DNA of 64,000 nt from Thalia democratica. Its lineage: Eukaryota. The DNA lies in assembly GCA_965202585.1 (NCBI GenBank), contig OZ241832.1, forward strand, positions 52,328,001-52,392,000, read 5' to 3'. Under the pieces are notes generated by a model, which had not been told where the DNA came from, did no database searches, and was given only the letters and a program-made list of their open reading frames with translations. Position numbers and translations under genes: made by a program. Below are positions 1,089-42,610 of the stretch, piece after piece; positions within the stretch are counted from its first letter, which is position 1, and every line of letters begins with the position of its first letter.

Positions 1089-1143
1089 ATCAAATTGCGA
1101 AAAAAGTTACTAGCCTCCCTATGGATTTAAAACTCATCATATA

Positions 1144-2549: not shown

Positions 2550-2802
2550 TTAAGTACGAATACTTAACTTGAAATATTTGTTGTAGCAGAACTGACAAAT
2601 ACTTTTCGGGATATTTTTAGTGATGTAATGTAATAGATCAAAATTCACCTTGTTTAACGTTAGAGAATGGTCACATTGATTATATTATTAACTGTAAACA
2701 AATTTCTACTTTAGAACCTATACTAAAATTATAATTATTAAACTAAACCTGTGATAATCATACTATAATTAATAAACTTAATTTTAACTGTATAGACAAT
2801 AA

Positions 2803-7383: not shown

Positions 7384-8006
7384 GTACATAAATATTTATC
7401 ACTATTTATAAGAAAATAAAGACAGCAACTCTGTCTTCATAACCAACATATGTATTTTAAAAGAACAAAAAACACTTAACAATAACAGAATAGCAAGAAA
7501 TCAAAACTAAAAATAAGAACAAGAAAGACAAAACTAAACATAAATTAATTTGTACAGAAGTTGTTTTTAAGATTAGCTACCTAAAAATATTCAAATTTAT
7601 TTGAAACTTCAAATGTACATTTTTGTGATTATTAAAGAAACTTTTCTCTTAACTTTATTATTTTTCTGATAAACTGCTTAAATCCTAGAAACTATAGTAA
7701 ACAAATCGAAAGTTAGTTGTTTTTATGTAGAATAAATACATAAATATTTACATAAGATCTAAATAGTATGCATATCTTTAATTTTAGATTAAATAAACTT
7801 TATTTATATTTTCACTTAATCAATAAAAAATTTATAAACATACCGTTATAAAACAGGTACATATAGTTATAAATAATTTATATATCTTATTGTACAAGTA
7901 AAATTACAAACTCTTAACGTTATTGAAAACAATGTAATTTTAGTACTTATTGAGAAGGAAAACAAAATAGTTTATCGTAAAGGGGCATGGAATTGTTAGT
8001 GGCTTT

Positions 8007-8636
8007 TCAAGAAGCCAACATGGCAACAGGCTCTTTCTCCTGCTCATCAGCAGCGGGCACCTCGGGAAGCTTCGCATCCGGAACTTCAGGCAGTGCCACG
8101 CCCGGCAGCTTGTGCATCTCCTTGGCAACAATCTGATCCAGCTCGGCCAGCAGGTCATCATCGTCCTCCTGGCTCATGCCACCTCCCAGTAGCTCATCTA
8201 GCTCCTTCTGGTACTCTATGGAGTCCTGCGTGTCCTCCATGATCTTCTCCACGTCCTCCCTGCTCATCAGGGCGTGCAACTGCTTCAGCGCCTGGTTGCC
8301 CGCCCTGAGCCCCTCCATCACCTTGTTCTGCGTCTGCGCCTCCTCGATGCGGTCCACCATCTGCTCCAGGTTGTCCAGCTGCCCCGCGGTCCTGTCCAGC
8401 AGCACGTCCTGCCTCTTCTTTTTCTTGAGCAGCAGCATGGCCTTGTCCCTCCTGCCCTCTTTCAGGCACTCCTTGGCCAGCCGCCTGAGCTTCTCGTGCT
8501 CGGCTTCAATCTTCCTCTGGTACAGCTTCAGCTGGTCCCTCTGCTTTTTCACTTGGAGGACAGCGTGGTCTGCGTCCGTTATCCTCGGGTCGGGCTTGCG
8601 CTTGTCAGCCTTGTTTCTGCTGAACAGTCCTCCCAT
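8007..8636 (-). CDS. CHMP6: Charged multivesicular body protein 6 / Vps20 (ESCRT-III, Snf7 family), single coding exon, 209 aa
   Basis: N-terminal myristoylation motif MGGLFSR, ITDADHAVLQVKKQRDQLKLYQRKI, LLLKKKK, acidic C-terminus with LPEVP. Confidence 0.95.
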   Translation of the reverse strand: MGGLFSRNKADKRKPDPRITDADHAVLQVKKQRDQLKLYQRKIEAEHEKLRRLAKECLKEGRRDKAMLLLKKKKRQDVLLDRTAGQLDNLEQMVDRIEEAQTQNKVMEGLRAGNQALKQLHALMSREDVEKIMEDTQDSIEYQKELDELLGGGMSQEDDDDLLAELDQIVAKEMHKLPGVALPEVPDAKLPEVPAADEQEKEPVAMLAS

Positions 8637-15542: not shown

Positions 15543-17393
15543 CAGGGTTGCCACTCTTTAAGCCAAAAAATCTTCCCTGAGTGACCAAAAATTTCCCTGA
15601 GTAACCTTAAATTTCCCTGAGTTTCCCTGAGTATTTTTCAAATCTTAAAAAAAAAAAAATTCTCTTCTAACACAAATTATTAATACCTCATTCTCATTTT
15701 TCTTCTTTAATAATAAAAGGAAGGTTGTATGTGTATGCTTCTGCATTAAATTTATGAAAAAAACTGTTTTCAAAAACTCAATCTTAAAAGGTTTAAACCA
15801 ATTAAAAATAAAAAACTAAATTTTTGCACAACTTTGTGTAAACTTGTTAATTAACTTTCTACATAAAAGAATAAAGTTTAATTTGTTTGACATTTTAATT
15901 GACAAAATTTAATTATACTATAATAATATTTTCACATGAAGAACTCACTTAAATGCATACATAATAACTTCATTATGACTTGTATGTCTTTCCTAGCAAC
16001 TGTTCTGAATGCAGTAAATAAAACTTAAAAGCTTAACATTATTGTAAAAAAACCTGCAAAAAGAAAGTTTAAAGAAATAGCTAAAGAAATATCTCATATC
16101 AAAGTACAACTTAATACCTAACAACTGATACAAAATAATCTAAATTTTTTTTTTTTTATGTCCTTTAGATGTTCATACACAATCTATTTTAAATAACTGA
16201 AAACATAATTTTGATTTTAAAACAATTTCACATTACCTAATAAAAAAATCTTAATACTGTTTTTTTAAGTATGCAATTTCTAAATCAATAGTTTTAATTT
16301 TATTTTCAAGTTTATTTGCGTTGTCCTTAGCAGCTATTCCTCTTGCTAATAATTCTTTCATTGCTTCTAAATCAGACTGTTTGTTGGCATCTGCAGTATA
16401 TTTGTCATAGTCTTCATTCAAACATTTGAGTTGCTTTGTAAGTTTACTTTTTTGTTCTCCTAACTTGCTCAAAGCATCACCTTTATTTGGAACATTTTTA
16501 GCAAAGCGCTGTTGCTCAAGATATGCCAAATACTGGGCCCTAGAAGATTTTACAAATTTTAACAATTCAGAACTTATTTCAACTGTGCTTGGTTCTAGAC
16601 TGTTTGCATATAGATGATCTTTGATCATTCTTCGGGACCTTATTGTCATCTCTCCCATATTAGTTGATATTACTTCCTTATTTAAGCTAAAGCCCCGTTC
16701 AACACTTGCCTGGCCATTGTGAAGCACAAAAACAGCCTCAAGGACTCTTGATTTATTTATTATTATTATTATTTATATTATTTTATTATTTATAAACAAA
16801 AATTTAACCTCTATTTTTTAACAAAAGTAATACAACACTAATCTGTATTCATTTTAATTTTTTTTACTGAAAACAAGTAGTTGTAAACAAATAACAAATA
16901 ACTTTATTATTTAAAAAATAAGAACTAATAGTACAACATAGTGTTTTTTAAACTACATAAGTAACTAAAAATAAAAAGTTTATTAGAACTTTTCAATGAA
17001 TAGTTAACAACAACTTTCATTTCTCTAAACTGTTTGATTTTACTTAAGTAAATATAAAATTAAAACTTAAAAAAAACTACAATGTTAATACTAAGAATAT
17101 TGAAGAACTAGCCGCAAGGCTAAGAAAATTCTAAATAACCACTTAAATAATAAAAATTACTACTTTTGAACAAAATATTGAAACTGGATTAACTAAACCT
17201 CATTCTAGATCTAGAAAAAAATTTCCCTGAGATTTTCAAAAACTTCCCTGAAATTTAGAGAAAAAATCAAAACTTCCCTGAGTTTCCCTGAGTTAAAAGA
17301 AAAATGCCAAAATTCCCTGAGTTTCCCTGAGATTTTCTATAGTTTGAAAATTCCCTGAGATTCCCTGAGTTCCCTGAGTGTGTGGCAACCCTG
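15543..17393 (-). mobile_element. Internally deleted hAT-like transposon (6-bp TSD) carrying the transposase C-terminus
   Basis: Same TIRs and TTCCCTGAG subterminal arrays as 2803-3296; exact TSD AAATAT at 15537-15542 and 17394-17399. Confidence 0.88.
16251..16750 (-). pseudogene. hAT-like transposase C-terminal (dimerisation-domain) fragment
   Basis: VFVLHNGQASVERGFSLNK followed by a coiled tail resembles the hAT S-x-A-x-x-E-R-x-F-S motif; no N-terminus or catalytic core present. Confidence 0.7.
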
Positions 17394-17662
17394 AAATATT
17401 ATTTAAACTGTTATTGCTGAATTATTTTAACTAATTGTTATCTTTATGTCACTTTATTAATGTCATTGCATGCAAACAACTTTAAATTTAGATTTTACTT
17501 ACACCAACCTTATTAGAAAATAAATGTTTATGGTAAGTTAGAATATTTTGTATGTATAGTGATATTCAGTTCTTTTACAAAGAAAAAATCAACTTAAATT
17601 AAACTATTGCCAGCTTGTAAAAATTTTTAAGAATGTCAGTTTTAAAGTATTTATAATTAAAA

Positions 17663-22147: not shown

Positions 22148-24005
22148 GACTAGATCATGGTTTTCCAAAATTAAGCGATACCGCGTGAAAGAAAGTCATT
22201 GGTGCAGAGTTGTCTTTTTTAATCAATTTTATTTACAAAAATTACTCGAGCAGCACATTTTATAATAGAACTAACATATATTTAATGTTCAGTATTCAAT
22301 TCGCACATCAACCCTTTATTTTTGGTAACCCTGCATTGATAAAACATAAAGTTCTCTTTCAAACAAATATTTTTAAAAGTAAACTAAGTCGCCTCCAAAT
22401 ACTACCTTTGATTTAAAACTGCTAGAATAGCTATATTTTTTGATGTTTGTTCTCAGTTTTATCTAATGAAATAGTAAGACTAATCATAGTATAGTTTATT
22501 CAACAAAAACGAAAAATATTGCTCAAAAATTTTTTGGTTTAATGACCTGGTAACGCAAAAAGACCTTTCGGTCATCTAGTTTTTTATACAACTAATTTGT
22601 ATAAATGTTAATCAGACAATAAATTTTCATATTAACTGTTTTATGGAAACCTCTATTGTGATACAAAACTAAATTGTTTTTATTAATTAAAATTTAAACT
22701 TAAATAAATGCGCAAATATAATGTAAAAGACATCTTAAAATTTGCAAAACTAGTGATAAAAAAACAAAAGCCTTCAAAATTTTATAGGGCTTAATTACAG
22801 AGCTAAGCTTATCAAAGTGATTATTTTTTTTAACCTTTGAAATGAAATTTTATAATAAAAATATTATTCAAAAAAGTTTTAAGACTTAAGGACTTAAGTT
22901 ATTAAAATATTTTTTGTTTCGGATAAACTCGTAAATGGTTTCTTCGCTATTAACTTCAAAGCGGAGACTTTCATACAGTAATATTGTTTATTGAACAAAA
23001 AAATAAAGTACTCAAAATGTTTGGTCTTTGAACCTGGTGCAGGAAAAATCTTTTGATTATTGAGTCGCACACCACTAAACGTCGTGTCTAGGATAATACA
23101 ACATGAAGTTATGCTTTTGCGTGTGTTGTGCTAGCAAATAAACTTATATAAATTTACTTAGCACAGTTTTAATAACTATAGAATAACTGTTTTTAATTAA
23201 AATGATATAACTTATGCAAATACACTTTTTACTTTTAAGTGGTTATCATTAAATTATCCGTAACTGATCTATTTTACTACCATAAAATACTTTCACAAAA
23301 CATAAATAACAATTTTTACGTTTTAAATAAAACTTTTAAAAAGATATAATAAAGCCAACTAAATAGGTTATCTTTTTAAATAAAAGTAATACTTATCGAT
23401 GTATGAAGCTTTATATCAGAGTTAAAATACAAGTAACTTATTTTCAAAACTTTTCATATTAGAGGATTTTTCAGTCGACTTTTAGGGTAAAACAATCAAA
23501 AATCGGTTCAAAAAAAGTTTATGATAAACTTACTGGCATAGATGCCAAAAGTAGCTTAAACGCTGAAAATTTGTTCTAAATTCAGCTTTGTTTCACAAAA
23601 GCTGTAAAATTATCATAAAAACCTTTTAATCCGAACTTTAGAAAATACGCCAAATTTGAATCCCTCCAAATAATTTTTTCAAATATTATTTAGCTAAAGT
23701 TTATAAATTGTTGTCAAAATGGCAATATGACTGTTGAAACTAATAAAATATCATTATAGTTAGAAGGAATATGATAAACATTTTGATAGTTGAAATGACA
23801 CTTTCAGTTAATAAAAAAAAATTATGAAAACATGAACATATATAATATATCACAATAAATCTTTAAAGTAGCGAAACTTTGCTAGAATTTGCTTTATTAT
23901 AAACTAACTTGCTAGTATCAGCCCAACTTGATAATAGCTACATGCGAAAAAAACTGAATTTACAAAATTAATTTGCTAACACTAAGACATATATATAATT
24001 ATGTT

Positions 24006-24057
24006 TAACTGTACTTAGCAGGGGCGTGTTTTGACTGGTTTCCTGTTTCCTGTAGAC
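24006..24057 (+). promoter_or_regulatory. Putative Pol II promoter motifs at the head of array unit 1 (GC-box-like GGGGCGTG, tandem ETS-like TTCCTG; CRE palindrome TGACGTCA at about 24262)
   Basis: GCAGGGGCGTGTTTTGACTGGTTTCCTGTTTCCTGT is a rare GC-rich island, kept in unit 2 (about 29942-29978, TGACGTCA at about 30183). Confidence 0.4.
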
Positions 24058-25023
24058 CCCTTGATGTAAAAAAAAGGAAAAAGGAGAAAAAGATTCTTAG
24101 AATATAATTAAAAACGTTGTTTATTGACTTTGTTTTGGTTATTTAATAAACTTTGAATAATGAATGTTGAATTCATAACACTGAAAGATTATAAGTTTCC
24201 TTAACAAAAAAATGCTCATTTTTGCCCAGCTGAAATAGATTTTAAATAAAGTTTTAATTGTGACGTCATAATAAGTAAAAATTTTAAAGTTAATTTTTTT
24301 CTGGGAAACATTTCACTAAGATGCTTTTAGTTCCCACTATAAATTGTTGCTTGGTGTAAATAAATTTTGAACAAGTATTGTTTTTGAACTAATAAGTACA
24401 ATTTTACTTAAAAGATGTCCAATATAATCACTAAAGTTTTATTTTACTTAATTGATTGTTTATAATAATTTTGTGTTAAACTTTTGTACCTTAACATTTA
24501 TAATTTTTGTTTATGTGTCAACCAACTGGGTTTAAATCTTGAAAAGTTCAATTTTGAGCTTTTTCAAAATCATCTTTAGACCACTACACTACCTGGAAAT
24601 TTATTCTTTTATCGTTTAATGGTATTTAAATATTTTTATATTAGCTGTTTTATTTTTTTATATCTGTTGGCCACAAAGTTTGTTCTTATTCTTTTTTAAT
24701 TTTTAACTCAGAGAGATTTCAAAATTATCATAAGAAATCCTGCACTATCAGGCAAACATTTAATTACAATTTAAAGATATTTCAATTTAATTATATAATT
24801 TTACGATCGTTGTCAAACTGTTTTTTACCTGTAAAAAACTAATTGATGGCTAAAAATGCACATTTAGAGTAAATTAACTTTCATATAGTTTCGTGCAAAC
24901 TGAAATGAAGTTGTTGCTGTAATTCCTTTTTTGTACATAAGTAAGTGAAAGAATAAATAGTAGAAAGTTAACTGAATTTACTTTTTTTGCCTGGACGAAC
25001 TAAATCTGAGCTTTGATCAACAG

Positions 25024-25189
25024 CTGCATCTCAAAACAATTTAAAAAATGCGAGTTATTTGAGCAATATACCTCACTTAGTTAGAAAAGAGGAAGTGTAA
25101 CTTGATTGTCTGATGAAACAAGTGTTAATTCATTTAAGTGTGAAGTCACCTTCTTTGTGATAATCTATCTGATTTTGAATCTATTGCCA
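25024..25189 (+). other. Exon-like unit B1 (copy at 30948)
   Basis: Branch-like ACTAAAT, pyrimidine tract and CAACAG| acceptor; shares ATGCGAGTTATTTG and AGAGGAARTGTAACTTGAT with the other B units; donor weak (GTACAG). Confidence 0.45.
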
Positions 25190-25277
25190 GTACAGACTTT
25201 GTTTAGTTAAATATATTAGAAAAATTTATTAGAATAAACTAGTGTGTAGGCATAAAGTAACACCACTGATTTGAATA

Positions 25278-25981
25278 CAGTGATTTCTCACTTATCCGGC
25301 CATTTTGGGCAAGCTTTTTTTGTAAATGAGGCCGGATTACCCTTTGGCCGGATAAAGAATAATATTGCTTTTTTCATATACCTCATATGCAGTGCATGCA
25401 ATAATACGTTTATTAAATATAAGTTAACTTAAATTAATGAATTTTTTCAACATATCAAAAATATAAAGCAGACGAAAATTAACGTAACAAAGCTTTGTAA
25501 AGTTTAAAATTAATGTAACGAAAAATAATTAGATCGTGAGTAGTTTAACTAATGCGGAGCTCTTTCTGAAAAAGAAAAAGAAGAGGCTTGTTTGTTTCTT
25601 GTTTTTAGCATAAAACTCGTAGAACTGGATAAGTTGTGAAATACTTTCAGATTTTTATTGTTTTTTGTTTCATCCGACCGATTGTGTACTAATGCTAAGA
25701 TATGTCTTGACAACATTTTTAAAAACAACCCGGTTTCATCACAATCGAAAATTGAATGTTAGGAGTAGCCCTCAGTTTGATATTTTATATTTGCATATCG
25801 CAAAAAATATAATTCAATTATCAAGTTTAATTTCTCTAAGAACTATCACATCACTATAAACTGCTTGCTTAGTTATTGAAATCAAATAAGACATGTATTT
25901 ATAATAAAACATTAGTTTAAAAAATCTTGACTTAAACCGTTCGTATGTATAAGCGAGGACCAGATAAGTGAGGAAGCACTG
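25278..25981. mobile_element. Tc1/mariner (pogo/Tigger-like) non-autonomous element, copy 1
   Basis: TA|CAGTGATTTCTCACTTATCCGG...CCAGATAAGTGAGGAAGCACTG|TA. Confidence 0.75.
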
Positions 25982-26626
25982 TAGTTTGATAAACTATAGT
26001 TTAAAGTTTACAACTTAATTGTGAACTATTAACCATAGTGAGATGTTTCGAATAATTTTACTAAATATTCTATTTAAAATTAGTGAAATTTAGTACTCAT
26101 ATATAAGTTATCTGTTTATTAAAATAGAGGTTATTCAAAATAACCTAAATATGAAACCAAAGGTCCTACGATTGTTAGATCAACCAAGATTTTATAATGT
26201 TGTATCTAAATTGTAAATTGTGAAATTCGATTCACATATTTAAATATTCTGTATCATTCAAGAAAATATTATACAGAAGTACTTAAATATGAAAATAGAA
26301 GATCATATTTTGTTACAGTAACTAATGTACATTTTCATATACACAAACACATCAAAACTAGTGATATTTGGTTCATAAATTTAAGTATTTCTGCATGATT
26401 TTGTGAAATATTTGATACAAAAATAATTCAATTTCTAAACAAAATATCATCACAAGTTGTAAAACTTCAAATAATAATACTTTTTTTTCAAAGTTTGTGA
26501 AATCCGGTTCACATTTTTAAGTTTTCTATATCATTACGTGTAAAACATATACTACAGAAATACTTGAATATAGAAACAGAACATCCTGTTTGTTGAAAAA
26601 AAACCTAACAAAACTTTTATCAACAG

Positions 26627-26800
26627 CCGCATCTCAAAACTATTGAAATATTTGTTGTTTTTGTAAAAGAATGCGAGTTATTTGCGCAAGAAAGGTCAAA
26701 GAGCTGAACAGAGGAAATGTAGCTTGATCTTCTGACGAAACCATTGTTACGTGTAGCGCGAACATACATTCATTATGTAGACTGATTCTGCTTTACACGC
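26627..26800 (+). other. Exon-like unit B2 (copies at 32499 and 37217)
   Basis: TTTTATCAACAG| acceptor; same conserved core; no donor at the homologous position. Confidence 0.45.
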
Positions 26801-27615
26801 CGAGAATGAACTTTGTTAATTTGAACAGACTGCATTAACTTATCAGAAAAATCAGTATGCAGACGTATACTAATAATGCTGTTTTGAATTATTAATATAA
26901 TAAACTATATTTCAAAGCTTTATTTTTTACTCGTGAAATATTAAGCATAAATAAGATTTGTCTTAGTTTAGTGAAATTTGGTACTCATATATTAGTTATC
27001 TGTATATTTTTGCATAATATATACAAAATAATTTAAATATGAAACCAAACATCCTACGATTATTAGAACAGCCAAAAACTTTTATAAGCTTAAGACTAAA
27101 ATTAAAACTTTGAAATTCGGCTCACACACCTAACCTTTATGTATCACTTTACAAAAACATGGTACAGAAGTACTTAAGTATGTAAATAAAAAAATCATAA
27201 ATCGTTTTATAACAAGAAATTTATGTAGAAACAGAACAAAAGAAGTGAAATTCGGTTCACATATTTTAATCTTCTGTATCATTTTATAAATATACTACAA
27301 AATTACTCAAACTTATATTCAAAAAAACTATATTCAAAAAAATAAGCAGCTAAACTCTGAAATAGTTTGTAGGGAAAATAATCATACATTTTTAAGCATC
27401 TTTATAAAAATTTCACGTCTCCCTCGTGATTCTTTAGTTATAATTCATGTAGCTGATGGTTTTTGCAATAATTTACATTAAATATTGTAACTATTTTAGA
27501 TTCTTTCATTAAAAAGAATATTTAACAGATGTTCAAAGCGGGCTCAGTAAAGATTGATTCAATTGAATAAGCTAAATTCTATTTTGTAATAATACATATA
27601 AACAGATCAAAATAA

Positions 27616-27702
27616 CTGATATTCGGTTCACATATTTAAGTCTTCTGTATCATTAAAAAAATATATGATACAGAAGTATTTAAATATGGAAATAGAAAAT
27701 CA
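27616..27702 (+). ncRNA. Best-formed representative hairpin of the array
   Basis: 5' arm CATATTTAAGTCTTCTGTATCA (27631-27652), 13-nt loop, 3' arm TGATACAGAAGTATTTAAATATG (27666-27688); lower stem TGATATTC..TTC / GAA..GAAAATCA. Confidence 0.65.
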
Positions 27703-28305
27703 TATTTTGTTACAGTAACAAATTTAAATATTACAGTTAACAAACTTAAATTAAAATATATAATATCAGATCAAAATTAGTGAAATTCGGTTCACTTATT
27801 AAAGCTTTCTGTATCATTCAAAAAATATATAATACAGAATTAATTAAATATGAAATCAAAATATCATCATAAGTTATAAAACTTCAAATACTAATAATTA
27901 TTTTTCCCAAAGTTATTGAAATCCGGTTCCCACATTTAAGTTTTCTGTATCATTATGTGTAAGGTATTTGGTACAGAAATACTTAAATATGAAAACAAAA
28001 CATCATGCTTGTTAAAAAACAACTTACTAAAACTTGAAATAAAGCAACTTTGTTTAGTCGTTTTACTTCATTTTACAAATTGTTTTTAATCTTTAAAAAC
28101 TACTTGATACTTAAAAAATGCACGTTCTGCGTAAAATTATTTTTTTATGTTTTATATATAATTATTTAGTTTCGTACAAAGTGAAATTATATTGTTGCCT
28201 GTTATGCTTTTTATTTACAAGATAAGTGAAAAAATAAGTAATAAAAATATAACTTATACAACTTTTTATGACTCGGATAAACTAAATCTAAAGTTTTATC
28301 TACAG

Positions 28306-28464
28306 CTTCTTCTCAAAATTATTGAGAAATATCTGTTTTTTGTAAAAATATGCGAGTTAGTTGTGCAATACACCTCAAATAGTGGGAAAAGAGAAAGTGT
28401 GATTTGAGTTGTAGCGCGAAAATACATTTCACATATAGACACTGGTTCTGTTTCTATCAAAAAA
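28306..28464 (+). other. Exon-like unit B3 (copies at 34172 and 38891)
   Basis: TTTTATCTACAG| acceptor and AAAA|GTAAGT donor at 28465; stops in all three frames. Confidence 0.55.
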
Positions 28465-29577
28465 GTAAGTTTAAAAAAAATATTATGGTTAGAAACTAAG
28501 CTCATTTAAATTTGTAAAAAATATGCAAGTTAGACTAAGCTCATATGATTGTGTTCATAATTGTATGTCAAGTTTTATTTATTTTTCTGTTTTTTTATAC
28601 TTAGCGCGAACAAAAATTTAATTTACAAACTGATTTTTCTTTAACCACCAATTATTAACTTTGTAAATTTAAATATACTGGATAAAGTTCCAAAAATCAG
28701 TTAGTAGGCATAAACTAATACTATTATTGGGAACTATTAATATAAAAAACTCTAATTTGAAGCTTCCAACTGCTTTGTAAACTATTAAACATAAATAAGA
28801 TGCTGTATTTAACTTTGCTTTAATTTCAAATAGTGTTGTTTATATTATTTGTATATTTTTACACTGTTCATACAAAACAACTAAAATATGAAACCAAAGA
28901 TCTTACGACCAACCAAGATTCTTTATAAAGTTTTGACTAAATTGAACGTTGTGATGTTCGGCTCACATATTCAAGTCATCTGTATCATTCAAAAATATAT
29001 GGTACATAATTACTTGAATATGCAAACAGTAACAAATATACATTTTCAAATTTAAATAACCAGACCAAAATTAGTGATATTCGGTTCACACATTCAAGTT
29101 TTCTGTATCACGTTATGAAATATATGATACAGAAATACTTAAATATGTAAACAAAATATCATCAAGAATTGTAAAACTTCAAATATTAGTGAGTTATTCT
29201 TTTCCAAAACTAGTGAAATCCAGTTTTCATATTTAAGTTTTCTGTATCATTATGTATAAGGTATATGTTACAGAAATACTTAAATATGGAAACAAAACAT
29301 CATGCTTGTAAAAAAATCTTACTAAAACTTAAATAAACAACTTTAACCATTTTACTTTATTTAAAATTTTTTTTTATCTTTTAAAATCTACTTGACAGCT
29401 AAAAATGCACGTTCATCGTGAAATTAACTTTGTTTTAGTTTAATACAAACTGAAATGAAACGGTTGCTTAAATTTTTTTTTTTTTATATAAAATAAGTGA
29501 GAGAATGAGTAGTAAAAAGTTTGCAGAACTCACTTATTTTTTGCCTGGACAAACTAAATTTGAACTTTTATCAACAG

Positions 29578-29760
29578 CTGCATCTCAAAACTATTGAGAA
29601 ATTTTGTTTTTTGTAGTAGAATGCGAGTTATTTGCGTCATTCTACTTAAAAGCGTGAGAGCAGAGGAAATGTAATTTGATCCTGTGATGAAATCAGTCTT
29701 ACATTGACTGTGTGGCGCGAGCGTTCTTTACGATAGACTGATTCTGTCTTATGCGCATAA
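29578..29760 (+). other. Exon-like unit B4 (copies at 35446 and 40168)
   Basis: ACTAAAT...TTTTATCAACAG| acceptor and ATAA|GTATGA donor at 29761; no conserved ORF. Confidence 0.55.
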
Positions 29761-31201
29761 GTATGAATTTTGTGAAAATATGTTCTATCCATTTCAATAA
29801 ACTTTTAATATCAATGATCTAATTTTTACAACAACCAGTGTTTTAGTATTTAAAGTTTAACAAGTATGTTTGACACTATTACATGTACTAATTAACTTGA
29901 TAAAACTAAGACATATATATAAATATGTTTAACTGTATTTAGCAGGGGCGTGGTTTGACTGGTTTCCTGTTTCCTGTGAAACCCCGGAAAAAAAAGAAAG
30001 AAAAAGGAAAAAAAGATTCTTAGAATATCAATTAAAACGTTGTTTATTGACTTTTTTTTGGTTGTTTGATTAACTTTGAATAATGAATGTTGAATTTATA
30101 GCACTGAAAGATTATAAGTTTCCTTAACAAAAAATGCTCGTTTTAGCCCAGCTGAAATAGATTTTAAATAAAGTTTTAATTGTGACGTCATAATAGGTAA
30201 AATTTTTAAGGTTGCATATCTTTTTTCTGGGAACCATTTTACTAAGATGCTTTAAGTTCCCATTATAAATTGTTGCTTAGTGTAAATAACTTTTGATTGA
30301 GTATTGTTTTGAACTTATAAGTAAAATTTTACTTAAAAGATGTCCAATATAATCACTAAAGTTTTATTTTACTTAATTGATTGTTTATGATAATGTTGTG
30401 TGAAACTTTTGTACCTTAACATTTATATTTTTGTTTATGTGTCAACCAACTGGGTTTAAACCTTGAAAAGTTCAATTTTGAGAGTTTTCAAAATTATCTT
30501 TAGACCACTACACCACCTGGTAATTTATTCTTTTATCATTTACTGGTATTTTAATATTTTTATATTAGCTGTTTTATTTTTGTATATCTGTTGGCCACAA
30601 ATTTTGTTCTTGATTTTTTGAAATTTCTAACTACGAGATATTTCAAAATTATCATTAGAAATCCTGCACCATCAGGCAAAAAATTAATTATAATGTAAAG
30701 ATATTTTAATTTAATTGTATAATTTTACTATCGTTGTCAAACTGTTTTTTACCTGTGAAAAACTACTTGATGGCTAAAAATGCATATTTAGCTTAAATTA
30801 ACTTTCATATAGTTTCGTGCAAACTGAAATGAAGTTGTTGCTGTAATTATTTTTTTGTACATAAGTAAGTGAAAGAATAAATAGTAGAAAGTTAACTGAA
30901 TTTACTTTTTTTGCCTGGACGAACTAAATCTGAGCTTTTATCAACAGCTGCATCTCAAAACAATTTAAAAAATGCGAGTTATTTGAGCAATATACCTCAC
31001 TTAGTTAGAAAAGAGGAAGTGTAACTTGATTGTCTGATGAAACAAGTGTTAATTCATTTAAGTGTGAAGTCACCTTCTTTGTGATAATCTATCTGATTTT
31101 GAATCTATTGCCAGTACAGACTTTGTTTAGTTAAATATATTAGAAAAATTTATTAGAATAAACTAGTGTGTAGGCACAAAGTAACACTACTGATTTTAAT
31201 A

Positions 31202-31904
31202 CAGTAATTTCTCACTTATCTGGCCATTTTGGGCAAGCATTCTTTGTAAATGAGGCCGAATTAGCCTTTGGCCGGATAAAAAAAATATTGCTTTTTTCAT
31301 TTACCTCATATGCAGTGCGTGCAATAATACGTACACTTGAATATATGTTAATTTGAATTATTAAATTTTTTTAAACATACCAAAACATTAAAGCAGACGA
31401 AAATAAACGTAGCAAAGCTTTGTAAAGTTTAAAATTAACGTAACAAAAAATAATTAGATCGTGAGTAGTTTAACTAATATCGGAGCTCTTTCTGAAAAGA
31501 AAAAGAAGAGGCTTGTTTGTTTCTTGTTTTTAGCACAAAAGTCGTAGAACTGGATAAGTTGTGAAACACTTTCTGGTTTTTATTGTTTTTTGTTTCATCC
31601 GACCGATTGTGTACTAATGCTAAGGTATGTCTTGGCAACGTTCTTAAAAAAAACCGGTTTCATCACAATCACAAATTGAATGTTAGGAGTAGCCCTCAGT
31701 TTGATATTTTATAATTTCATATCGAAAAAAAAAATTCAATTATCAAATTTAATTTCTCTAAGAACTATCACATCACAATGAACTGCTTGCTTAGTTATTG
31801 AAATCAAATTAGACATGTATTTATAATAAAAAATTAGTTTAAAAAAAATCTTCTTGACTTAAACCGTCCGTATAAGCGAGGACCAGATAAGTGAGGAAGC
31901 ACTG
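31202..31904. mobile_element. Tc1/mariner (pogo/Tigger-like) non-autonomous element, copy 2 (duplicated with the array)
   Basis: Same TIRs and TA flanks, at the homologous position in unit 2. Confidence 0.75.
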
Positions 31905-34900
31905 TATAATAAACTATAGTTTGAAGCTTACAACTTACTTGTGAACTATTAACCATAGTGAGATGTTTCGAATAATTTAATAAATATTCTATTTAAAATT
32001 AGTGAAATTTGGTACTCATATATAAGTTATCTGTTTATTACAATATAAGTTATTCAAAATAACCTAAATATGAAACCAAAGATCCTACGATTGTTAGATC
32101 AACCAATATTGTACAATATTGTATCTAAATTGTAAATTGTAAAATCCGGTTCACACATTTAAGTTTTCTATATCTTTACGTGTAAAATATATGCTAGAGA
32201 AATACTTGAATATGGAAACAAAACATCATGTTTATAAAAAACAACTTACTAAAACTTTAAATAAAGCAATTTAATTAGTTGCTTTACTGTATTTAATCCT
32301 TAAAAAACTACCTGACAGCTAAAAACGCACATTTAGCGTAATATTAGCTTTTATGTAGTTTCATACAAACTGAAATGATATTGTTGCAGGAATCAATTTT
32401 TTGTACAAAAATAAGTGAGAGAATAAGCAGTAAAAAAATATTCGAACTCACTTTATTTTTACCTTGACGAACTAAATCTGAACTTTTATCAACACCAGCA
32501 TCTCAAAACTATTGAGAAAATTTGTTGTTTGTGTAAAAGAATGCGAGTTATTTGCGCAAGAAAGGTCAAAGAGCTGAACAGAGGAAATGTAGCTTGATCG
32601 TCTGACGAAACCATTGTTACGTGTAGCGCGAACATACATTCATTGTGTAGACTCATTCTGCTTTACACGCCGAGAATGAACTTTGTTAGTTTGAACAGAC
32701 TTTGTTTAATTTATCAGAAAATTCAGTATGTAGACGTATACTAATACTGCTGTTTAGAATTATTAATATAATAAACTATACTTCGAAGCTTTATTTTTAC
32801 TCGTAAAATATTAAGCATAAATAAGATTTGTCTTAGTTTAGTGAAATTCGGTACTCATGTTTTAGTTATCTGTATATTTTTGCATAAGATATACAAAATA
32901 ACTTAAATATGAAACCAAAGATCCTACGATTATTAGAACAGCCAAAAACTTTTATAAGCTTAAAACTAAAATGAAAATTGTGAAATTCGGCCCACACACT
33001 TAACCTATATGTATAATTTTACAAAAACATGGTACAGATGTACTTAAGTATGTAAATAAAAAATCATAAATCTTTTTATAACAACAAATTTATGTAGAAT
33101 CAGAACAAAAGAAGTGAAATTCGGCTCACATGTTTTAATGTTCAGTATCATTTCAGAAATATACTACAAAATTACTCAAACTTATAATCAAAAAAATTAT
33201 ATTCAGAATAATAAGCAGCTAAACTCTGAAATAGTTTGTAGGGAAAAAAATCATACATTTTTCAGCATCATTATAAAAAATTCACATCTTCTCGTGCTTC
33301 TTTAGTTATAATTCATGTAGCTGATGGTTTTTTGCAGTAATTTACATTAAAATATTGTAACTTTTTTAGATTCTTTCATTAAAAAGAATATTTAACAGAT
33401 GCTCAAAGCGGGCTCAGTAAAGATTGATTCAATTGAATAAGCTAAATTCTATTTAGTAATATTACATAAAAACAGATCAAAATAACTGATATTCGGTTCA
33501 CATATTTAAGTCTTCTGTATCATTAAAAAAATGTATGATAGAGAAGTATTTAAATATGGAAATAGAAAATCACATTTTGTTACAGTAACAAATTTAAATG
33601 TTACAGTTAACAAACTTAAATCAAAATATATATTACCAGATCAAAATTAGTGAAATTCGGTTCACTTATTAAAGCTTTCTGTATCATTCAAAAAATATAT
33701 AATACATAATAACTTAAATTTGAAAACAAAATATCATCATAAGTTGTAAAACTTAAAATACTAATGAATTTTTTTTCCAACTAGTGAAATCCGGTTACCA
33801 CATTTAAGTTTTCTGTATCATTTTTCTAAGACATATGGTACAGAAATACTTGAATATGAAAACAAAACATCATGTTTGTAAAAAACAACTTACTAAACAT
33901 TGAAATAAAGCAAATTTGTTAAGTCGTTTTACTTCATTTAACAAATTGTTTTTTATCTTTAAAAACTACTTGATATTTAAAAAATGCACATCTGCGTAAA
34001 ATTAATTTTTTATGTTTTATATATAATTATTTAGTTTCGTACAAAGTGAAATGATATTGTTGCCTGAATTGTTTTTTATTTACAAAATAAGTGAAAATAT
34101 AAGTAATAAAAATTTAACTTAAACAACTTTTTTTTTACTCGGCTAAACTAGATCTGAACTTTTATCTACAGCTCCTTCTCAAAATTGTTAAAAATATCTG
34201 TTTTTTGTAAAAATATGCGAGTTAGTTGTGCAATACACCTCAAATAGTGGGAAAAGAGAAAGTGTGGTTTGAGTTGTAGCGCGAAAATACATTTCACATA
34301 TAGACTGGTTCTGGTTCAATCAAAAAAGTAAGGAGTTTTGGAAAAAAAAATTTGGTTAGAAACTAAGTTCACACTGATTGTGTTCATAATTGTATGTCAA
34401 GTTTTATTCATTTTTCTGTTTTTTTATACTTAGCGCGAACAAAAATTTAACTTACAAACTGATTCTTCTTTAACCACCAATTGTTAACTTTGTAAATTTA
34501 AATATACCGTATTTAGTTCATAAAATCAGTGTGTAGGAATAAACTAATACTTTTTTTGGGAACTATTAATATTAAAAAAAACTGTAATTTGAAGCTTCCA
34601 ACTGCTTAGTAAACTATTAAACATAAATAAGATGCTGTATATAATTTTACTTTAATTTCAAATGTTGATAATTAGATTATTTGTATATTTTTCCACTGTT
34701 TATACAAAAATAAATAAAATGTGAAACCAAAGATCCTACGATTGTTAGACCAACCAAGAATTTTTATAAAGTTTTGACTAAATTGAATGTTGTGATGTTT
34801 GGCTCACATATTCAAGTCTTCTGTATCATTAAAAAAATATATGGTACATAATTACTTGAATATGTAAATAGAAAACCATATTTTGTAACAGTAACAAATA

Positions 34901-37900
34901 TACATTTTCATATTTAAATAACCAGACCAAAATTAGTGATATTCGGTTCACACATTCAAGTTTTCTGTATCACGTTATGAATTATATGATACATAAATAC
35001 TTAAATATGTAAACAAAATATCATCAAGAATTGTAAAACTTCAAATATTAGTGAGTTATTCTTTTCCAAAATTAGTGAATTCCGGTTCCCATATTAAAGT
35101 TTTCTGTATCATTATGTGTAAGTTATATATTACAGAAATACTTAAATATGGAAACAAAACATCATGCTTGTAAAAAAATCTAACTAAAACTTGAAATAAA
35201 ACAACTTTGTTTAGTCATTTTACTTTATTTTTCAAATTAGTTTTTAACTTTAAAATTCTACTTGACAGCTAAAAATGCACGTTCAGTGTAAAATTAACTT
35301 TGTTTTAGTTTAATACAAACTGAAATGAAACGGTTGCTTAAAATGTTTTTTTAATATAAAATAAGTGAGAGAATGAGTAGTAAAAAGTTAACAGAACTCA
35401 CTTATTTTTTGCCTGGACAAACTAAATTTGAACTTTTATCAACAGCTGCATCTCAAAACTGTTGCGAAACTTTGTTTTTTGTAATAGAATGCGAGTTATT
35501 TGCGTCATTCTACTTAAAAGCGTGAGAGCAGAGGAAATGTAATTTGATCCTGTGATGAAATCAGTCTTACATTGACTGTGTGACGCGGGCGTTTTTTACG
35601 ATAGACTGATTCTGTCTTATGCGCATAAGTATGATTTTTGTGAAAATATGTCCCTATCCATTTCAATAAACTTTTAATATCGATGATCTAATTTTTACAA
35701 CAACCAGAGTTTTAGTATTTAAAATTTAACAAGTATGTTTGACACTATTACATGTTAACCACTTTTTGAGTCAGAAAATAAGCCTGAGTGACTAAAGACT
35801 AGACTTAGTACACAAGCTAATCTTAAGGAGTGGTATATATAAGCAAAAAACTAATTTAAATTACAATGAAAATTAGACATTTATAGATCTTGAATTATTT
35901 AAATATTAACAATTAATTACTAATTAAAAAATTTCAAGTAAAGCAACAGTTGAAGATTTTTAAAAGATATCAAAATAAACCCAATATTTTTAATGAAATT
36001 ATAACTAGTCTCAGTCAAGCCGAGTTTTTGTAAATATATTAAAACTAGCCTCAGTTGGTCTAGGTTTTTCATGATTTAAAACTAGACTTAATTATTCTTA
36101 GAGAGCTATGTATGTGACAGCCCTGACATTATTGACCCTTCCTATACTTTAATTTTATTTTAAGTAAAACATATATGATTTTTTTCGGCCTAACTAATTT
36201 TTTGTCAAATATCAGTTGATTAAGCTGATTAATATAGTGATTTTTAAATGTAGCAAAACGATTTTAAACAATAAAAGTTAATAAAATTAAACATTAATAG
36301 AACAGTTTTATTTTGTTTTAAGAATCTATGAGATTTGCTCACTTCGCTTTTTTTTTTGGGCAGCTAAGGGTGGAAGAATTTTTACATAAGGTAACAGAAT
36401 AGAACTAGGAGAGTACAAAAATTGTCGTTTTATTAACAACTTATTATTTTTATCTGTTTATTAAAATATAAGTTATTCAAAATAATCTAAATATGAAACC
36501 AAAGTTCCTACGATTGTTAGATATTTTTATACTTTTAATTATAAACCAAGATTTTATAATGTAGTATCTAAATTGTAAATTGTGAAATTCAATTCACATA
36601 TTTAAGTATTCTGTATCATTCAAGAAAATATTTACAGAAGTACTTAAATATGAAAATAGAAGATCATATTTTGTTACAGTAACAAATGTACATTTTCATA
36701 TACCTAAACAGATCAAAATTAGTGATATTCGGATCATAAATTTAAGTATTTCTGCATCGTTTTGTGAAATATTTGATACAAAAATACTTGAATATGTAAA
36801 CAAAATATCATCATTAGTTGTAAAACTTCAAATATTAATACCTTTTTTTTTAAGTTTGCGAAACCCGGTTCACATATTTAAGTTTTCTATATCATTATGT
36901 GTAAAATATATGCTACAGAAATAGTTGAATATGGAAACAAAACATCATGTTTGTTAAAAAAAAAACTTACTAAAACTCGAAATAAAGCAATTTTATTTAG
37001 TAGCTTTACTGTATTTAATCCTTAAAAAACTACTTGACAGCTAAAAATACACATTTAGCGTAAAATTAGCTTTCATTTAGTTTCATACAAACTGAAATGA
37101 TATTGTTGCTGGAATTAATTTTTGTACAAAAATATGTGGGAGAATAAGTAGTAAAAAGTTATTCGAACTCACTTTTTTGCTGCCTGGACAAACTAAATCT
37201 GAACTTTTATCAACAGCCGCATCTCAAAACTATTGATAAATTTGTTGTTTGTGTAAAAGAATGCGAGTTATTTGCACAAGAAAGCTCAAAGAGCTGAACA
37301 GAGGAAATGTAACTTGATCGTCTGACGAAACCATTGTTACGTGTAGCGCGAACATACATTCATTATGTAGACTGATTCTGCTTTACACGCCGAGAATGAA
37401 CTTTGTTAGTTTGAACAGACTGCATTAACTTATCAGCAAATTCAGTTTGAAGACGTATACTAATGCTAATGTTTTGAATTATTATCAGAATAAACTATAC
37501 TTCGAAGCTTTATCTTTTACTCGTAAAATATTAAGCATAAATAAGATTTGTCTTAGTTTAGTGAAATTTGGTACTCATATATTAGTTATCTGTATATTTT
37601 TGCATAAGATATACAAAATAACTTAAATATGAAACCAAAGATCCTACGATTATTAGAACAGCCAAAAACTTTTATAAGCTTAAAACTAAAATTAAAATTG
37701 TGAAATTCGGCTCACACACTTAACCTTTATGTATAATTTTACAAAAACATGGTACAGAAGTACTTAAGTATGTAAATAAAAAAATCATAAATCGTTTTAT
37801 AACAACAAATTTATGTAGAATCAGAACAAAAGTAGTAAAAATCGGCTCACATGTTTTAATCTTCTGTATCATTTTAGAAATATACTACAAAATTACTCAA

Positions 37901-40900
37901 ACTTATAAACAAAAACATTATATTTAAAAATATAAGCAGCTAAACTCTGAAATAGTTTGTAGGGAAAATAATCATACACTTTTCAGCATCTTTATAAAAA
38001 TTTACGTCTCCCTCGTGCGTCTTTAGTTATAATTTATGTAGCTGATGGTTTAGCAATAAGCTACATTAAATATTGTAACTTTTTTAGATTCTTTCATTAA
38101 AAAGAATATTTAACAGATGTTCAAAGCGGGCTCAGTGAAGATTGGTTCAATTGAATAAGCTAAATTCTATTTTGTAATAATAGATATAAACAGATCAACA
38201 TAACTGATATTCGGTTCACATATTTAAGTCTTCTGTATCATTAAAAAAATATATGATACAGAAGAACTTAAATATGGAAATAGAAAATCATATTTTGTTA
38301 CAGCAACAAGTTTAAATCTTACAGTTAACAAACTTAAATTAAAATATATATTACCAGATCAAAATTAGTGAAATTCGGTTCACTTATTAAAGCTTTCTGT
38401 ATCATTCAAAAAATATATAATACATAATAACTTAAATTTGAAAACAAAATATCATCATAAGTTGTAAAACTTAAAATACTAATGAATTTTTTTTCCAACT
38501 AGTGAAATCCGGTTACCACATTTAAGTTTTCTGTATCATTTTTCTAAGACATATGGTACAGAAATACTTAAATATGAAAACAAAACATCATGTTTGTTAA
38601 AAAACAACTTACTAAACATTGAAATAAAGCAACTTTGTTAAGTCGTTTTACTTCATTTTACAAATTGTTTTTTATCTTTAAAAACTACTTGATATTTAAA
38701 AAATGCACATCTGCGTAAAATTATTTTTTTATGTTTTATATATAATTATTTAGTTTCGTACAAAGTGAAATGATATTGTTGCCTGAATTGCTTTTTATTT
38801 ACAAAATAAGTGAAAATATAAGTAATAAAAATTTAACTTAAACAACTTTTTTTTTACTCGGCTAAACTAGATCTGAACTTTTATCTACAGCTCCTTCTCA
38901 AAATTGTTAAAAATATCTGTTTTTTGTAAAAATATGCGAGTTAGTTGTGCAATACACCTCAAATAGTGGGAAAAGAGAAAGTGTGGTTTGAGTTGTAGCG
39001 CGAAAATACATTTCACATATAGACTGGTTCTGGTTCAATCAAAAAAGTAAGGAGTTTTGGAAAAAAAAATTTGGTTAGAAACTAAGTTCACACTGATTGT
39101 GTTCATAATTGTATGTCAAGTTTTATTCATTTTTCTGTTTTTTTATACTTAGCGCGAACAAAAATTTAACTTACAAACTGATTCTTCTTTAACCACCAAT
39201 TGTTAACTTTGTAAATTTAAATATACCGTATTTAGTTCATAAAATCAGTGTGTAGGCATAAACTAATACTATTATTGGGAACTATTAATATTAAAAAAAA
39301 ACTATAACTTGAAGCTTTCAACTGTTTTGTAAACTATTAAACATAAATAAGATGCTGTATATAATTTTGCTTTAATTTCAAATATTGATATTTAGATTAT
39401 TTGTATATTTTTCCACTGTTTATACAAAAATAAATAAAATGTGAAACCAAAGATCCTACGATTGTTAGACCAACCAAGAATTTTTATAAAGTTTTGACTA
39501 AATTGAATTTTGTGATGTTTGGCTCACATATTCAAGTCTTCTGTATCATTCAAAAAACATATGGTACGTAATTACTTGAATATGCAAATAGAAAACCATA
39601 TTTTGTAACAGTAACAAATATACATTTTCAAATTTAAATAACCAGACCAAAATTAGTGATATTCGGTTCACACATTCAAGTTTTCTGTATCACGTTATGA
39701 ATTATATGATACATAAATACTTAAATATGTAAACAAATATCATCAAGAATTGTAAAACTTCAAATATTAGTGAGTTATTCATTTCCAAAACTAGTGAAAT
39801 CCGGTTCCCATATTTAAGTTTTCTGTATCATTATGTGTAAGGTATATGTTACAGAAATACTTAAATATGGAAACAAAACATCATGCTTGTAAAAAAATCT
39901 TACTAAAACTTGAAATAAAACAACTTTGTTTAGTCATTTTACTTTATTTTTCAAATTATTTTTTAACTTTAAAAACTTACTTGACAGCTAAAAATGCACG
40001 TTCAGTGTAAAATTAACTTTGTTCTAGTTTAATACAAACTGAAATAAAACGGTTGCTTAAAATGTTTTTTTTTTAATATAAAATAAAAGAGAGAATGAGT
40101 AGTAAAAAGTTAACAGAACTCACTTATTTTTTGCCTGGACAAACTAATTTTGAACTTTTATCAACAGCTGCATCTCAAAACTGTTGCGAAACTTTGTTTT
40201 TTGTGATAGAATGCGAGTTATTTGCGTCAGACTACTTAAAAGCGTGAGAGCAGAGGAAATGTAATTTGATCCTGTGATGAAATCAGTCTTACATTGACTG
40301 TGTGACGCGGGCGTTTTTTACGATAGACTGATTCTGTCTTATGCGCATAAGTATGATTTTTGTGAAAATATGTCCCTATCCATTTCAATAAACTTTTAAT
40401 ATCGATGATCTAATTTTTACAACAACCAGAGTTTTAGTATTTAAAATTTAACAAGTATGTTTGACACTATTACATGTTAACCACTTTTTGAGTCAGAAAA
40501 TAAGCCTGAGTGACTAAAGACTAGACTTAGTACACAAGCTAATCTTAAGGAGTGGTATATATAAGCAAAAAACTAATTTAAATTACAATGAAAATTAGAC
40601 ATTTATAGATCTTGAATTATTTAAATATTAACAATTAATTACAAATTAAAAAATTTCAAGTAAAGCAACAGTTGAAGATTTTTAAAAGATATCAAAATAA
40701 ACCCAATATTTTTAATGAAATTATAACTAGTCTCAGTCAAGCCGAGTTTTTGTAAATATATTAAAACTAGCCTCAGTTGGTCTAGGTTTTTCATGATTTA
40801 AAACTAGACTTAATTATTCTTAGAGAGCTAAGTATGTGACAGCCCTGATATTATTGACCCTTCCTATACTTTAATTTTATTATAAGTAAAAAATAATTGA

Positions 40901-41264
40901 TTTTTTTTTGCCTAACTAATTTTTTGTCAAATATCAGTTGGTTAAGCTGATTAATATAGTGATTTTTAATGTAGCAAAACGATTTTAAACAATAAAAGTT
41001 AATAAAATTAAACATTAATAGAACAGTTTTATTTTGTTTTAAGAATCTATGAGATTTGCTCACTTCGCTTTTTTTTTTGGGCAGCTAAGGGTGGAAGAAT
41101 TTTTACATAAGATAACAGAATAGTACTAGGAGAGTACAAAAATTGTCGTTTTATTAACAACTTATTATTTTTATCTGTTTATTAAAATATAAGTTATTCA
41201 AAATAACCTAAATATGAAACCTAAATATGAAAGAAATAACCTAAATAATATGAAAATAAGTCTC

Positions 41265-41334
41265 GTGCACCCTAAAGAATTTCATGTACACTAGAGTGCA
41301 GCAGTGTACACCGTGCCGACCACTGCTCTAGATC
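41265..41334. mobile_element. Right-end fragment of a hAT MITE that terminates the array
   Basis: Ends GTGCCGACCACTG followed by CTCTAGAT (Charlie-type target); partner left TIR not found. Confidence 0.45.
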
Positions 41335-42610
41335 TACTTTTAATGGAAGCTAAAAAGTACATGAAAGCAGTGTATGGAGTTGAAAACTCAACAATAGTAG
41401 AAGTTCTAATAAAAATTAAAAAACAAGCAATGTAAAACAGCAAGAAGAAGTAAAATCTCAAAAAGAAAAATGTTATAGTTTAAATAATTATATATTTTTG
41501 TTTTTATTCACTATTATAAACTCCAAAATATTTAGGTAGGTTAGTTTTATAATTGAGTTTGACTAGCAAAATTTTAAAAACGTACCCCCACCTCACTAAT
41601 TATTGTCTCCCGACTTACCAAACTCGATAAAAAATGATAAAATTGCCTTCTTTGGAAACCCTGGCGTATACTCTGTCTATAAAGTATTTTGACTGCAGAA
41701 ATAACTTCTGTAACATATAATTTAAATATATGACTTATTATATAACAATTAATTGAAAACGTTAGTTTAAGTATTGAAAAATTTTAATAAAGACGTTTTC
41801 TGTTGAGATAACTTTTTTTTTTTAATTTTACTTTAGGAAAGATATAGTAAGTTCAGCATTTAAAAAACATGAGATAAAATTGAAACACAACACAACTCTA
41901 TTTTATATTTTCCTTAAAATTCTTTTTCGCCTAGTGGCTTCTAGTTGCCTATGACTTTGTAAAGTGATTTAGAATAAAGCGACTTAGTTATCAAAAAATA
42001 AATAGAGATTTAAAGTTAGTATTTTTTACTTTAAAAGGAAGGAATTATTAAACTAACTATTTCAAAAAATAAAAGATATCTAAAAAAAAGAAAAAGTAAG
42101 TTTCTTATAGAAGCTAAGCTAATCGAAACTTTTTTACAATTTTTTAACTTATTAATTTTACAACTCTTTATAGCTAAAAAAGTTTATGAAACACCTTACT
42201 ATATTATTTAACAAAAGTAGTTATGGCTTAAATAAAAAAAACTTTTTTACAAAGTCGTAAATTTTACAACCTTGCAGTATAGAAATTTCTATTATTCATT
42301 TGTAATTATACGTTTTCGAGCCGGATGAATTATGACGAAAAATACAGGGTAAGTGGAGTGGCGAAGCGCTTACTCAGTGAAAAACTTTAATAAATAGTTA
42401 AAGTTGAATTAGATATATAGATCTGATCAAAACTGTTCTTTTTGAACATAACATACCCTTCGTTTTATTTTTACAACTTATTGAGCATATTTACTATTTG
42501 TTGTAACTGATTATATGTCAAATACTTTTTGTGTTAAAGATAGTAAATTTCCAATGAATTAAAATTGCATTTATACGGTTACATGACAATTCAAACTTCG
42601 ATAACTTAAA

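Follow-up and report, generated by a model that had tools for sequence, protein, structure and literature searches.

Candidate microRNA hairpins amplified by tandem and segmental duplication in Thalia democratica, probably read from the minus strand

We analysed a 64-kb stretch of Thalia democratica DNA (64,000 nucleotides; GenBank assembly GCA_965202585.1, contig OZ241832.1, positions 52,328,001 to 52,392,000 of the forward strand), referred to below as the window, with positions counted from its first letter. Between 26080 and 39883 it holds a cluster of paralogous hairpins that an earlier note, made from the letters of the sequence, had put forward as a mega-cluster of an undescribed, primary microRNA (pri-miRNA)-like family read from the plus strand. 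Here we describe the anatomy of the cluster, its strand asymmetry, its conservation profile and its low genomic copy number, and from these we infer how the hairpins may be transcribed and processed, which arm may be chosen as guide and what function the family may have. Throughout, the hairpins have the status of candidate microRNAs (miRNAs).

Organisation of the hairpin cluster

Iterated nhmmer searches detected 36 full hairpin units, all in the same orientation, together with about five truncated remnants of A/E type (28850-28902, 36478-36507, 39422-39456, 41182-41227), so the earlier figure of about 39 copies was a fair count. The 3p-arm motif alone has 32 matches against 0.19 expected. 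Two to four units, spaced 131-161 bp, make up each group, and 280-1000 bp lie between one group and the next. The repeated unit of about 135 bp reported earlier is recognisable as the spacing inside the groups, but it does not build one array, as Tandem Repeats Finder (TRF) returned no array with a 135-bp period. Satellite DNA was rejected on this ground and because the groups consist of two to four units that differ by 15-25%.

Self-BLAST revealed that a block of 13 hairpin types (u01-u13) is present three times. Segmental copy I is 92% identical to copies II and III, the latter two are 96% identical to each other, and the modules inside one block are 72-82% alike. Since contigs matching copy I exactly are about 51-54 deep and divergent contigs about 113-130 deep, the three segmental copies are real in the reads. 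What the earlier note called a mega-cluster is a 13-hairpin block that was recently triplicated, with a third of the copies decayed. The features are listed below; minus strand for the hairpins is the probable strand, assigned from the tests described in the next section, and minimum free energies (MFE) are in kcal/mol.

26080 to 39883, minus strand: the complete cluster, with 13 paralog types among its 36 full units (iterated nhmmer, alignments).
24000 to 29886, no strand: segmental copy I, hairpins u01-u13; 24000-26310 aligns with 29924-32233 at 91.8%, and identity to copies II and III is 91-93% over 26612-28504 and 28529-29886 (self-BLAST).
29924 to 36860, no strand: segmental copy II, hairpins u14-u24; 32142-36503 aligns with 36861-41225 at 96.0% over 4374 bp.
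36861 to 41227, no strand: segmental copy III, hairpins u25-u36, ending in the truncated A-type unit 41182-41227.
26080 to 26586, minus strand: group 1, u01 26080-26166, u02 26217-26305, u03 26358-26449, u04 26494-26586; minus-strand MFE -17.3, -25.8, -19.0 and -17.7, z -3.3, -5.3, -3.8 and -1.5, respectively.
26968 to 27329, minus strand: group 2, u05 26968-27054 (intact, z -4.1), u06 27107-27196 (decayed, z -1.4), u07 27242-27329 (decayed, z +0.3).
27613 to 28005, minus strand: group 3, u08 27613-27702 (folds well on either strand, MFE -32.3 plus and -27.5 minus), u09 27777-27866 (decayed), u10 27913-28005 (minus -28.7, z -6.7).
28948 to 29302, minus strand: group 4, u11 28948-29036, u12 29071-29161 (the best unit: MFE -40.2 on the minus and -26.4 on the plus strand, z -10.9, stem of 36 bp, loop of 12 nt), u13 29210-29302.
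31999 to 32228, minus strand: group 5, u14 31999-32085, u15 32136-32228; corresponds in copy II to group 1, less two units.
32838 to 33198, minus strand: group 6, u16 32838-32924 (z -5.4), u17 32977-33066 and u18 33111-33198 (both decayed).
33483 to 33872, minus strand: group 7, u19 33483-33572, u20 33647-33736, u21 33781-33872; the minus-strand 3p arm is identical in u19, u08 and u31, and the other arm differs.
34789 to 35164, minus strand: group 8, u22 34789-34878, u23 34933-35023 (plus -20.0 against minus -33.9), u24 35072-35164.
36579 to 36947, minus strand: group 9, u25 36579-36666 (minus-strand z -8.3), u26 36719-36810 (minus-strand z -5.3), u27 36855-36947 (weak on the minus strand).
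37558 to 37919, minus strand: group 10, u28 37558-37644 (intact, z about -7 on both strands), u29 37697-37786 and u30 37832-37919 (both decayed).
38201 to 38590, minus strand: group 11, u31 38201-38290 (plus -34.6, minus -33.7), u32 38365-38454, u33 38499-38590 (minus -27.2).
39509 to 39883, minus strand: group 12, u34 39509-39598, u35 39653-39742 (plus -18.7 against minus -32.7), u36 39791-39883 (plus -27.0 against minus -32.6).

Folding of the hairpins and choice of strand

The alignment displays the upper stem of about 22 bp with its 1-nt bulge, the loop of near-constant length (9-16 nt) and variable sequence, and the basal stem, all as first described. When the structure of the best unit was imposed on all 36 units, 79% of the cells paired, against 31-45% with the partners slid by 1-3 columns, and changes on both sides at 11 pairs amounted to 30 cells against 15.4 +/- 2.9 in shuffles. 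On the minus strand 23 units combine z below -3 with at least 24 bp, with a median stem of 33 bp and a 5' side of 38 nt; on the plus strand about 18 units have z below -3. Roughly two thirds of the units are intact, with stems of 30-36 bp, and the fold is lost in types F, G, I and part of D. The 23 units, at 24-36 bp, have the at least 16 paired positions in a duplex of about 22 nt and the loop of at least 8 nt asked for by miRBase and MirGeneDB. Their minus-strand stem lengths and the lower stem of the consensus fold also agree with the Microprocessor ruler, which calls for about 35 bp in total, 11-13 bp of it in a lower stem between single-stranded flanks. The TG seen earlier 13-14 nt before the arm is conserved in the alignment, and the GTG at the start of the loop occurs on the plus strand in types D, J and M only. 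A candidate basal UG is conserved at the stem base on both strands (TG at alignment columns 5-6; UGAU opens the minus-strand stem).

The stem cells are strongly asymmetric between the strands: read on the plus strand they contain 102 A:C mismatches against 46 G:U pairs (35 against 12 in copy I alone), and on the minus strand the counts are reversed. Base composition has no skew by which mutation bias could account for this asymmetry. The minus-strand fold is the more stable in 26 of the 36 units, with a mean MFE of -22.0 kcal/mol against -17.8 on the plus strand (Wilcoxon p 1e-4 over the full set, 0.003 when restricted to the 13 copy-I types). For the 20 best, intact units, to which the consensus folds refer, RNAalifold gave -8.6 kcal/mol and 25 pairs on the minus strand, lower stem included, and -0.9 kcal/mol and 14 pairs on the plus strand, where the lower stem is absent. 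Among the lower-stem pairs one is U:G in 17 of these 20 units and another alternates between U:G and C:G, both being pairable on the minus strand only. Counts of AATAAA and of splice motifs did not discriminate between the strands. Since mismatch counts, fold energies and RNAalifold all agree, the hairpins are probably read from the minus strand, and the plus-strand reading first proposed, with a 3p guide of about UACAGAARUACUURAAUAUG, is disfavoured by the same tests and by a variable base within its would-be seed. This correction determines which 22-mers and which seed to look for.

Conservation of the arms

On the minus strand the longest near-invariant block is UGAUACAGAA, at the 5' end of the 3p arm. 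The best conserved heptamer of the unit, AUACAGA, is unchanged in 25 of the 36 units, compared with 19 for the most conserved heptamer of the opposite arm. Positions of the 5p arm that face the block are variable and often form wobbles or mismatches (e.g. pair 34/65), and a conserved 3p arm facing a variable 5p arm reads as the pattern of guide against star. A 22-mer counted from that U of the 3p arm would end about 14 nt above the stem base, which would fit the usual Drosha distance. A plus-strand reading would make the invariant block the 3' end of the 5p arm and leave the 3p seed first proposed with a position that may be G, A or U.

Among the older paralog modules stems differ by 14-16%, loops by 27% and spacers by 23% plus 6.5% indels. 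Among the three recent copies, intact types have the fewest variable columns in the minus-strand 3p arm (3.0%), followed by the opposite arm (5.8%), the spacer (8.3%) and the loops (14.8%; Fisher p 0.03 for 3p arm against spacer), and the decayed types vary like spacer. In this comparison among paralogs conservation thus follows the order of an miRNA: guide arm, star arm, then loop and flanks. The signal of selection is modest.

Copy number and nearby repeats

Read depth was summed over contigs at 85% likeness in three runs matching the cluster, all of them genomic-DNA-like. The summed depth over the hairpins is 200-560, compared with about 50 for single-copy contigs and 1,000-300,000 for the flanking transposons; the hairpin family is therefore confined to this locus, in few copy-equivalents. 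Moreover, the spacers between the hairpins were duplicated along with them, which argues that the hairpins are not independent insertions. On these two grounds we rejected a dispersed miniature inverted-repeat transposable element (MITE) or foldback element, and the outcome named in the earlier note as fatal to its proposal, that the unit would prove to be a dispersed MITE or a satellite, was checked and did not materialise, given the low copy number and the missing TRF array.

MITEs are common in the window, and the duplicated segment itself carries a high-copy repeat:

29924 to 30740, with a second copy at about 24000-24800, no strand: high-copy interspersed repeat in the duplicated segment, summed contig depth 130,000-300,000.

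Set against about 50 for single-copy sequence, this depth amounts to a genomic copy number in the thousands. At 31190-31905 (also 25270-25960) lies an element of about 700 bp that has inverted ends of the form CTCACTTATCTGGCC / GGACCAGATAAGTGAG; its copy-I counterpart has a depth of 1,000-8,000 (over 25300-26099), and it is probably a second MITE inside the duplicated segment. Elsewhere in the window the octamer TCCCTGAG has 25 matches, all on the plus strand, against 0.44 expected; they form short tandem runs at 2806-3300 and about 15550-17400, inside an element of about 500 bp with inverted ends CAGGGTTGCCAC / GTGGCAACCCTG, which has the look of an internally repetitive MITE family. The octamer is identical to the first 8 nt of lin-4/miR-125, and its complement is the 8-mer target site of that family. 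Its first copy lies directly 3' of a minus-strand gene for an RBM19-like protein, described below.

Spacer module between the groups

Between the hairpin groups a second, non-hairpin module recurs, which was delimited by nhmmer, alignment and a conservation profile.

24959 to 40363, no strand: spacer module ("B unit"), about 250 bp, 11 copies of 4 types.
Copies in the left part, no strand (nhmmer): 24959-25145, 26611-26816, 28242-28453, 29511-29773, 30883-31069, 32429-32686.
Remaining copies, no strand (nhmmer): 34107-34319, 35379-35641, 37150-37406, 38826-39038, 40101-40363.

Its fold is unexceptional (z -0.3 on the plus and -2.0 on the minus strand). Each strand offers motifs resembling splice sites or a TATA box, among them the TATA-like GATAAAAG on the minus strand, and the conservation profile fixes no exon-like boundaries on either strand; the module may be a promoter or an exon present in many copies. 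Conservation peaks at TTTTATCAACAG and AATGCGAGTTATTTG, and the module contains an 11-bp palindrome (AATAAGTGAG...CTCACTTATT). A C/D box small nucleolar RNA was considered and rejected: UGAUGA...CUGA occurs in one type, is deleted in B03/B07/B10 and altered in B02, and the module has neither a terminal stem nor an Rfam match. A short island rich in G+C (GTGCACCC...GTGCAGCAGTGTACACCGTGCCGACCACTGCTCTAGA) adjoins the cluster on its right at 41260-41330, a position that would be upstream if the minus strand is transcribed.

Searches for known families and coding potential

Rfam 15 yielded no usable match in the window at gathering or permissive thresholds, the best sub-threshold hits being miRNA-like but at chance level, with 21-25 bits (E 0.5-2.9) and cut-offs of 53-100, in line with the earlier statement that this is not a recognised family. 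The AAGUGCU seed of miR-430/427/302 is in neither arm, the conserved core being AUACAGA. A search of full-text literature for the arm sequences returned only unrelated primers and small interfering RNAs (siRNAs), the tunicate and salp miRNA literature contains no such family, and the motifs are absent from the supplement of a 2023 Salpa paper.

A tRNA scan of the window found none. The longest open reading frame (ORF) of the hairpin region (24000-42000) has 71 aa, and exact look-up of the two longest ORFs inside the cluster found no record; with no ORF above 71 aa a protein-coding reading was rejected. Transcription by RNA polymerase III was likewise rejected on account of the U runs in the stems, as such runs would terminate it.

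Neighbouring genes

The window is AT-rich, with a G+C content of about 25% outside genes and 30-47% within them, and contains long uninterrupted ORFs. Two of them encode recognisable proteins:

3885 to 6140, minus strand: RBM19-like protein, 751 aa, RRM domains, single uninterrupted ORF.
8007 to 8636, minus strand: CHMP6/Snf7 protein, 209 aa, single uninterrupted ORF.

The closest named relatives of both proteins are from tunicates (Styela, Phallusia, Ciona), at only 38-57% identity, and relatives of 74-97% identity, which for the RBM19-like protein stand at 97%, 90% and 74%, were found in ENA metagenome assemblies only; the RBM19-like gene is also present in marine metagenome and metatranscriptome runs. 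The close relatives in metagenome assemblies are likewise single ORFs, and since this holds for both genes here as well, the lineage is suggested to be intron-poor.

Interpretation

We interpret the cluster, with a confidence slightly better than even, as a lineage-specific, locally amplified miRNA-like family on the minus strand, and consider it rather probable that this is a genuine miRNA locus on one strand or the other. Geometry, compensatory changes, conservation, low copy number, absent coding potential and the lack of an Rfam counterpart fit the earlier proposal of paralogous, pri-miRNA-like hairpins of an undescribed family, but the strand and the mature arm then named were probably wrong. 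An ancestral hairpin would have given rise to about 13 diverged paralogs in groups of three or four, 135 bp apart, and the whole block would then have been copied three times. The minus strand would be transcribed into one or several polycistronic primary transcripts, in which each intact hairpin (stem of about 35 bp, lower stem of 12-15 bp with conserved G:U pairs, loop of 9-16 nt) would be cut by Drosha/DGCR8 and then by Dicer. If the guide comes from the minus-strand 3p arm, beginning UGAUACAGAA, most members would share the AUACAGA core as seed. The copies would add dosage, and about one third of them would be decaying pseudo-hairpins. Several shorter transcription units, perhaps one per spacer module, are more plausible than a single 15-kb transcript, which the 30-40 AATAAA signals per strand make unlikely. 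A more specific version, in which a pelagic tunicate independently evolved an array with many promoters like that of miR-430, each 250-bp spacer module driving a same-seed minus-strand triplet so that a burst of one family appears at a defined life stage (e.g. early embryo or germline), is quite unlikely on the present evidence.

Several observations weigh against the minus-strand miRNA interpretation. About one third of the units have decayed. For the full set of 36 units RNAalifold found no consensus fold, its plus-strand structure being empty, and in type H (u08, u19, u31) the plus-strand fold is at least as good as that of the minus strand. The CNNC motif, whose absence from its canonical position on the plus strand the earlier note had already pointed out, does not occur 16-18 nt downstream of the 3p cut in any of the 20 minus-strand units inspected, and the minus-strand UGU is placed within the stem, a few nt short of the loop, rather than at the loop start. 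The arms of the two youngest copies differ by 3.8% and their spacer by 3.7%, so any constraint is weak or recent. The AATAAA signals and the failure to reach an Rfam gathering threshold belong here as well, and scans of Joint Genome Institute (JGI) metagenome contigs for two-arm and guide-arm patterns gave no match and hence no cross-species copy. Furthermore, the cluster was not returned from a small same-species run that contains the RBM19-like gene and may be RNA; should the run be RNA, this would count weakly against an abundant and stable host transcript in the sample concerned.

Neutral decay of a tandemly duplicated palindrome or foldback (e.g. a MITE relic), with no RNA function and with conservation due to youth and gene conversion, would account for the decayed third of the units, for the arms of the youngest copies, which have no deficit of substitutions, and for the setting among transposons in a window rich in MITEs. 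A DNA palindrome predicts equal numbers of G:T and A:C, yet 46 and 102 were found, with conserved wobble positions; among old paralogs the loops outpace the stems in divergence, intact units are constrained and decayed ones are not, and the family is not dispersed and carries its spacers along. We regard a purely neutral origin as unlikely. Selection on RNA structure, visible in the G:U asymmetry and the covariation, would equally be expected if the hairpins were structured modules of a long non-coding RNA, i.e. repeated protein-binding or scaffolding stems that are no Drosha/Dicer substrates, and the conserved flank GUGAACCGAAUUUCAC would suit such modules. This, too, appears doubtful to us, given the close resemblance to Microprocessor substrates in length of stem, size of loop and lower stem, the peak of conservation at the seed-like position of one arm instead of symmetrically over the stem, and the lack of a stable transcript in the one run that may be RNA.

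That the same hairpins are miRNA genes on the plus strand, with the 3p guide of the earlier note, is improbable in our judgement. The 18 or so units with z below -3, type H at its best, the conserved TG that precedes the plus-strand 5p arm by 13-14 nt, and a strongly conserved pyrimidine tract plus AG and GTGAG/GTAAG in the spacer module, readable as plus-strand splice sites, have to be set against the excess of A:C over G:U, a consensus fold without a lower stem, and a would-be seed with a variable base while the invariant block sits at the 3' end of the 5p arm. We give hardly any credence to the locus as a source of other small RNAs, whether endogenous siRNAs from hairpins or Piwi-interacting RNAs (piRNAs): it is repetitive, unidirectional and non-coding, and piRNAs are abundant in pelagic tunicates (PMC5174732), but hairpin siRNA loci have far longer inverted repeats and piRNA clusters need no conserved 35-bp hairpins with seed-like conservation.

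Comparison with known amplified clusters

Many ancestral miRNAs were lost in tunicates and others, specific to their lineages, were gained; the pelagic groups have barely been sampled. As judged from sequence, the anatomy described here corresponds to a young miRNA cluster of a single, lineage-specific family that expanded by tandem and segmental duplication, in the way of miR-430/427, C19MC or the rodent Sfmbt2 cluster, with an unrelated predicted seed. Zebrafish miR-430 and Xenopus miR-427 comprise tens of paralogous hairpins with the same seed, arranged as repeated triplets with a repeated spacer, and in miR-430 this spacer places a promoter in every repeat, so that amplification provides dosage. 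The Thalia cluster resembles them in its many paralogous hairpins of one family, in repeated groups with a repeated spacer; it differs in the putative seed, AUACAGA instead of AAGUGCU, and in having only 36 copies, a third of them decayed. Human miR-548, derived from Made1 MITEs, is dispersed genome-wide with target-site duplications. Near-palindromic, AU-rich hairpins that fold on both strands are common to miR-548 and the present family, which in contrast is restricted to one locus, has a low copy number and was duplicated together with its spacers.

The primate C19MC and the rodent cluster in Sfmbt2 intron 10 (C2MC; PMC3212979) are likewise young, lineage-restricted and tandemly amplified, with hairpins alternating with a repeated non-hairpin module and growth by segmental duplication. 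They lie in introns of known host transcripts and have links to SINE/Alu (short interspersed) elements and imprinting, unlike the Thalia cluster, for which no host gene or flanking SINE unit is known. If validated, the cluster would represent a large, young, single-seed miRNA family in a pelagic tunicate, and its intact and decayed copies and its guide and star arms would offer a natural series for the birth and death of amplified clusters. It would then stand as a second independent case beside the amplified miR-430/427 and C19MC clusters of vertebrates.

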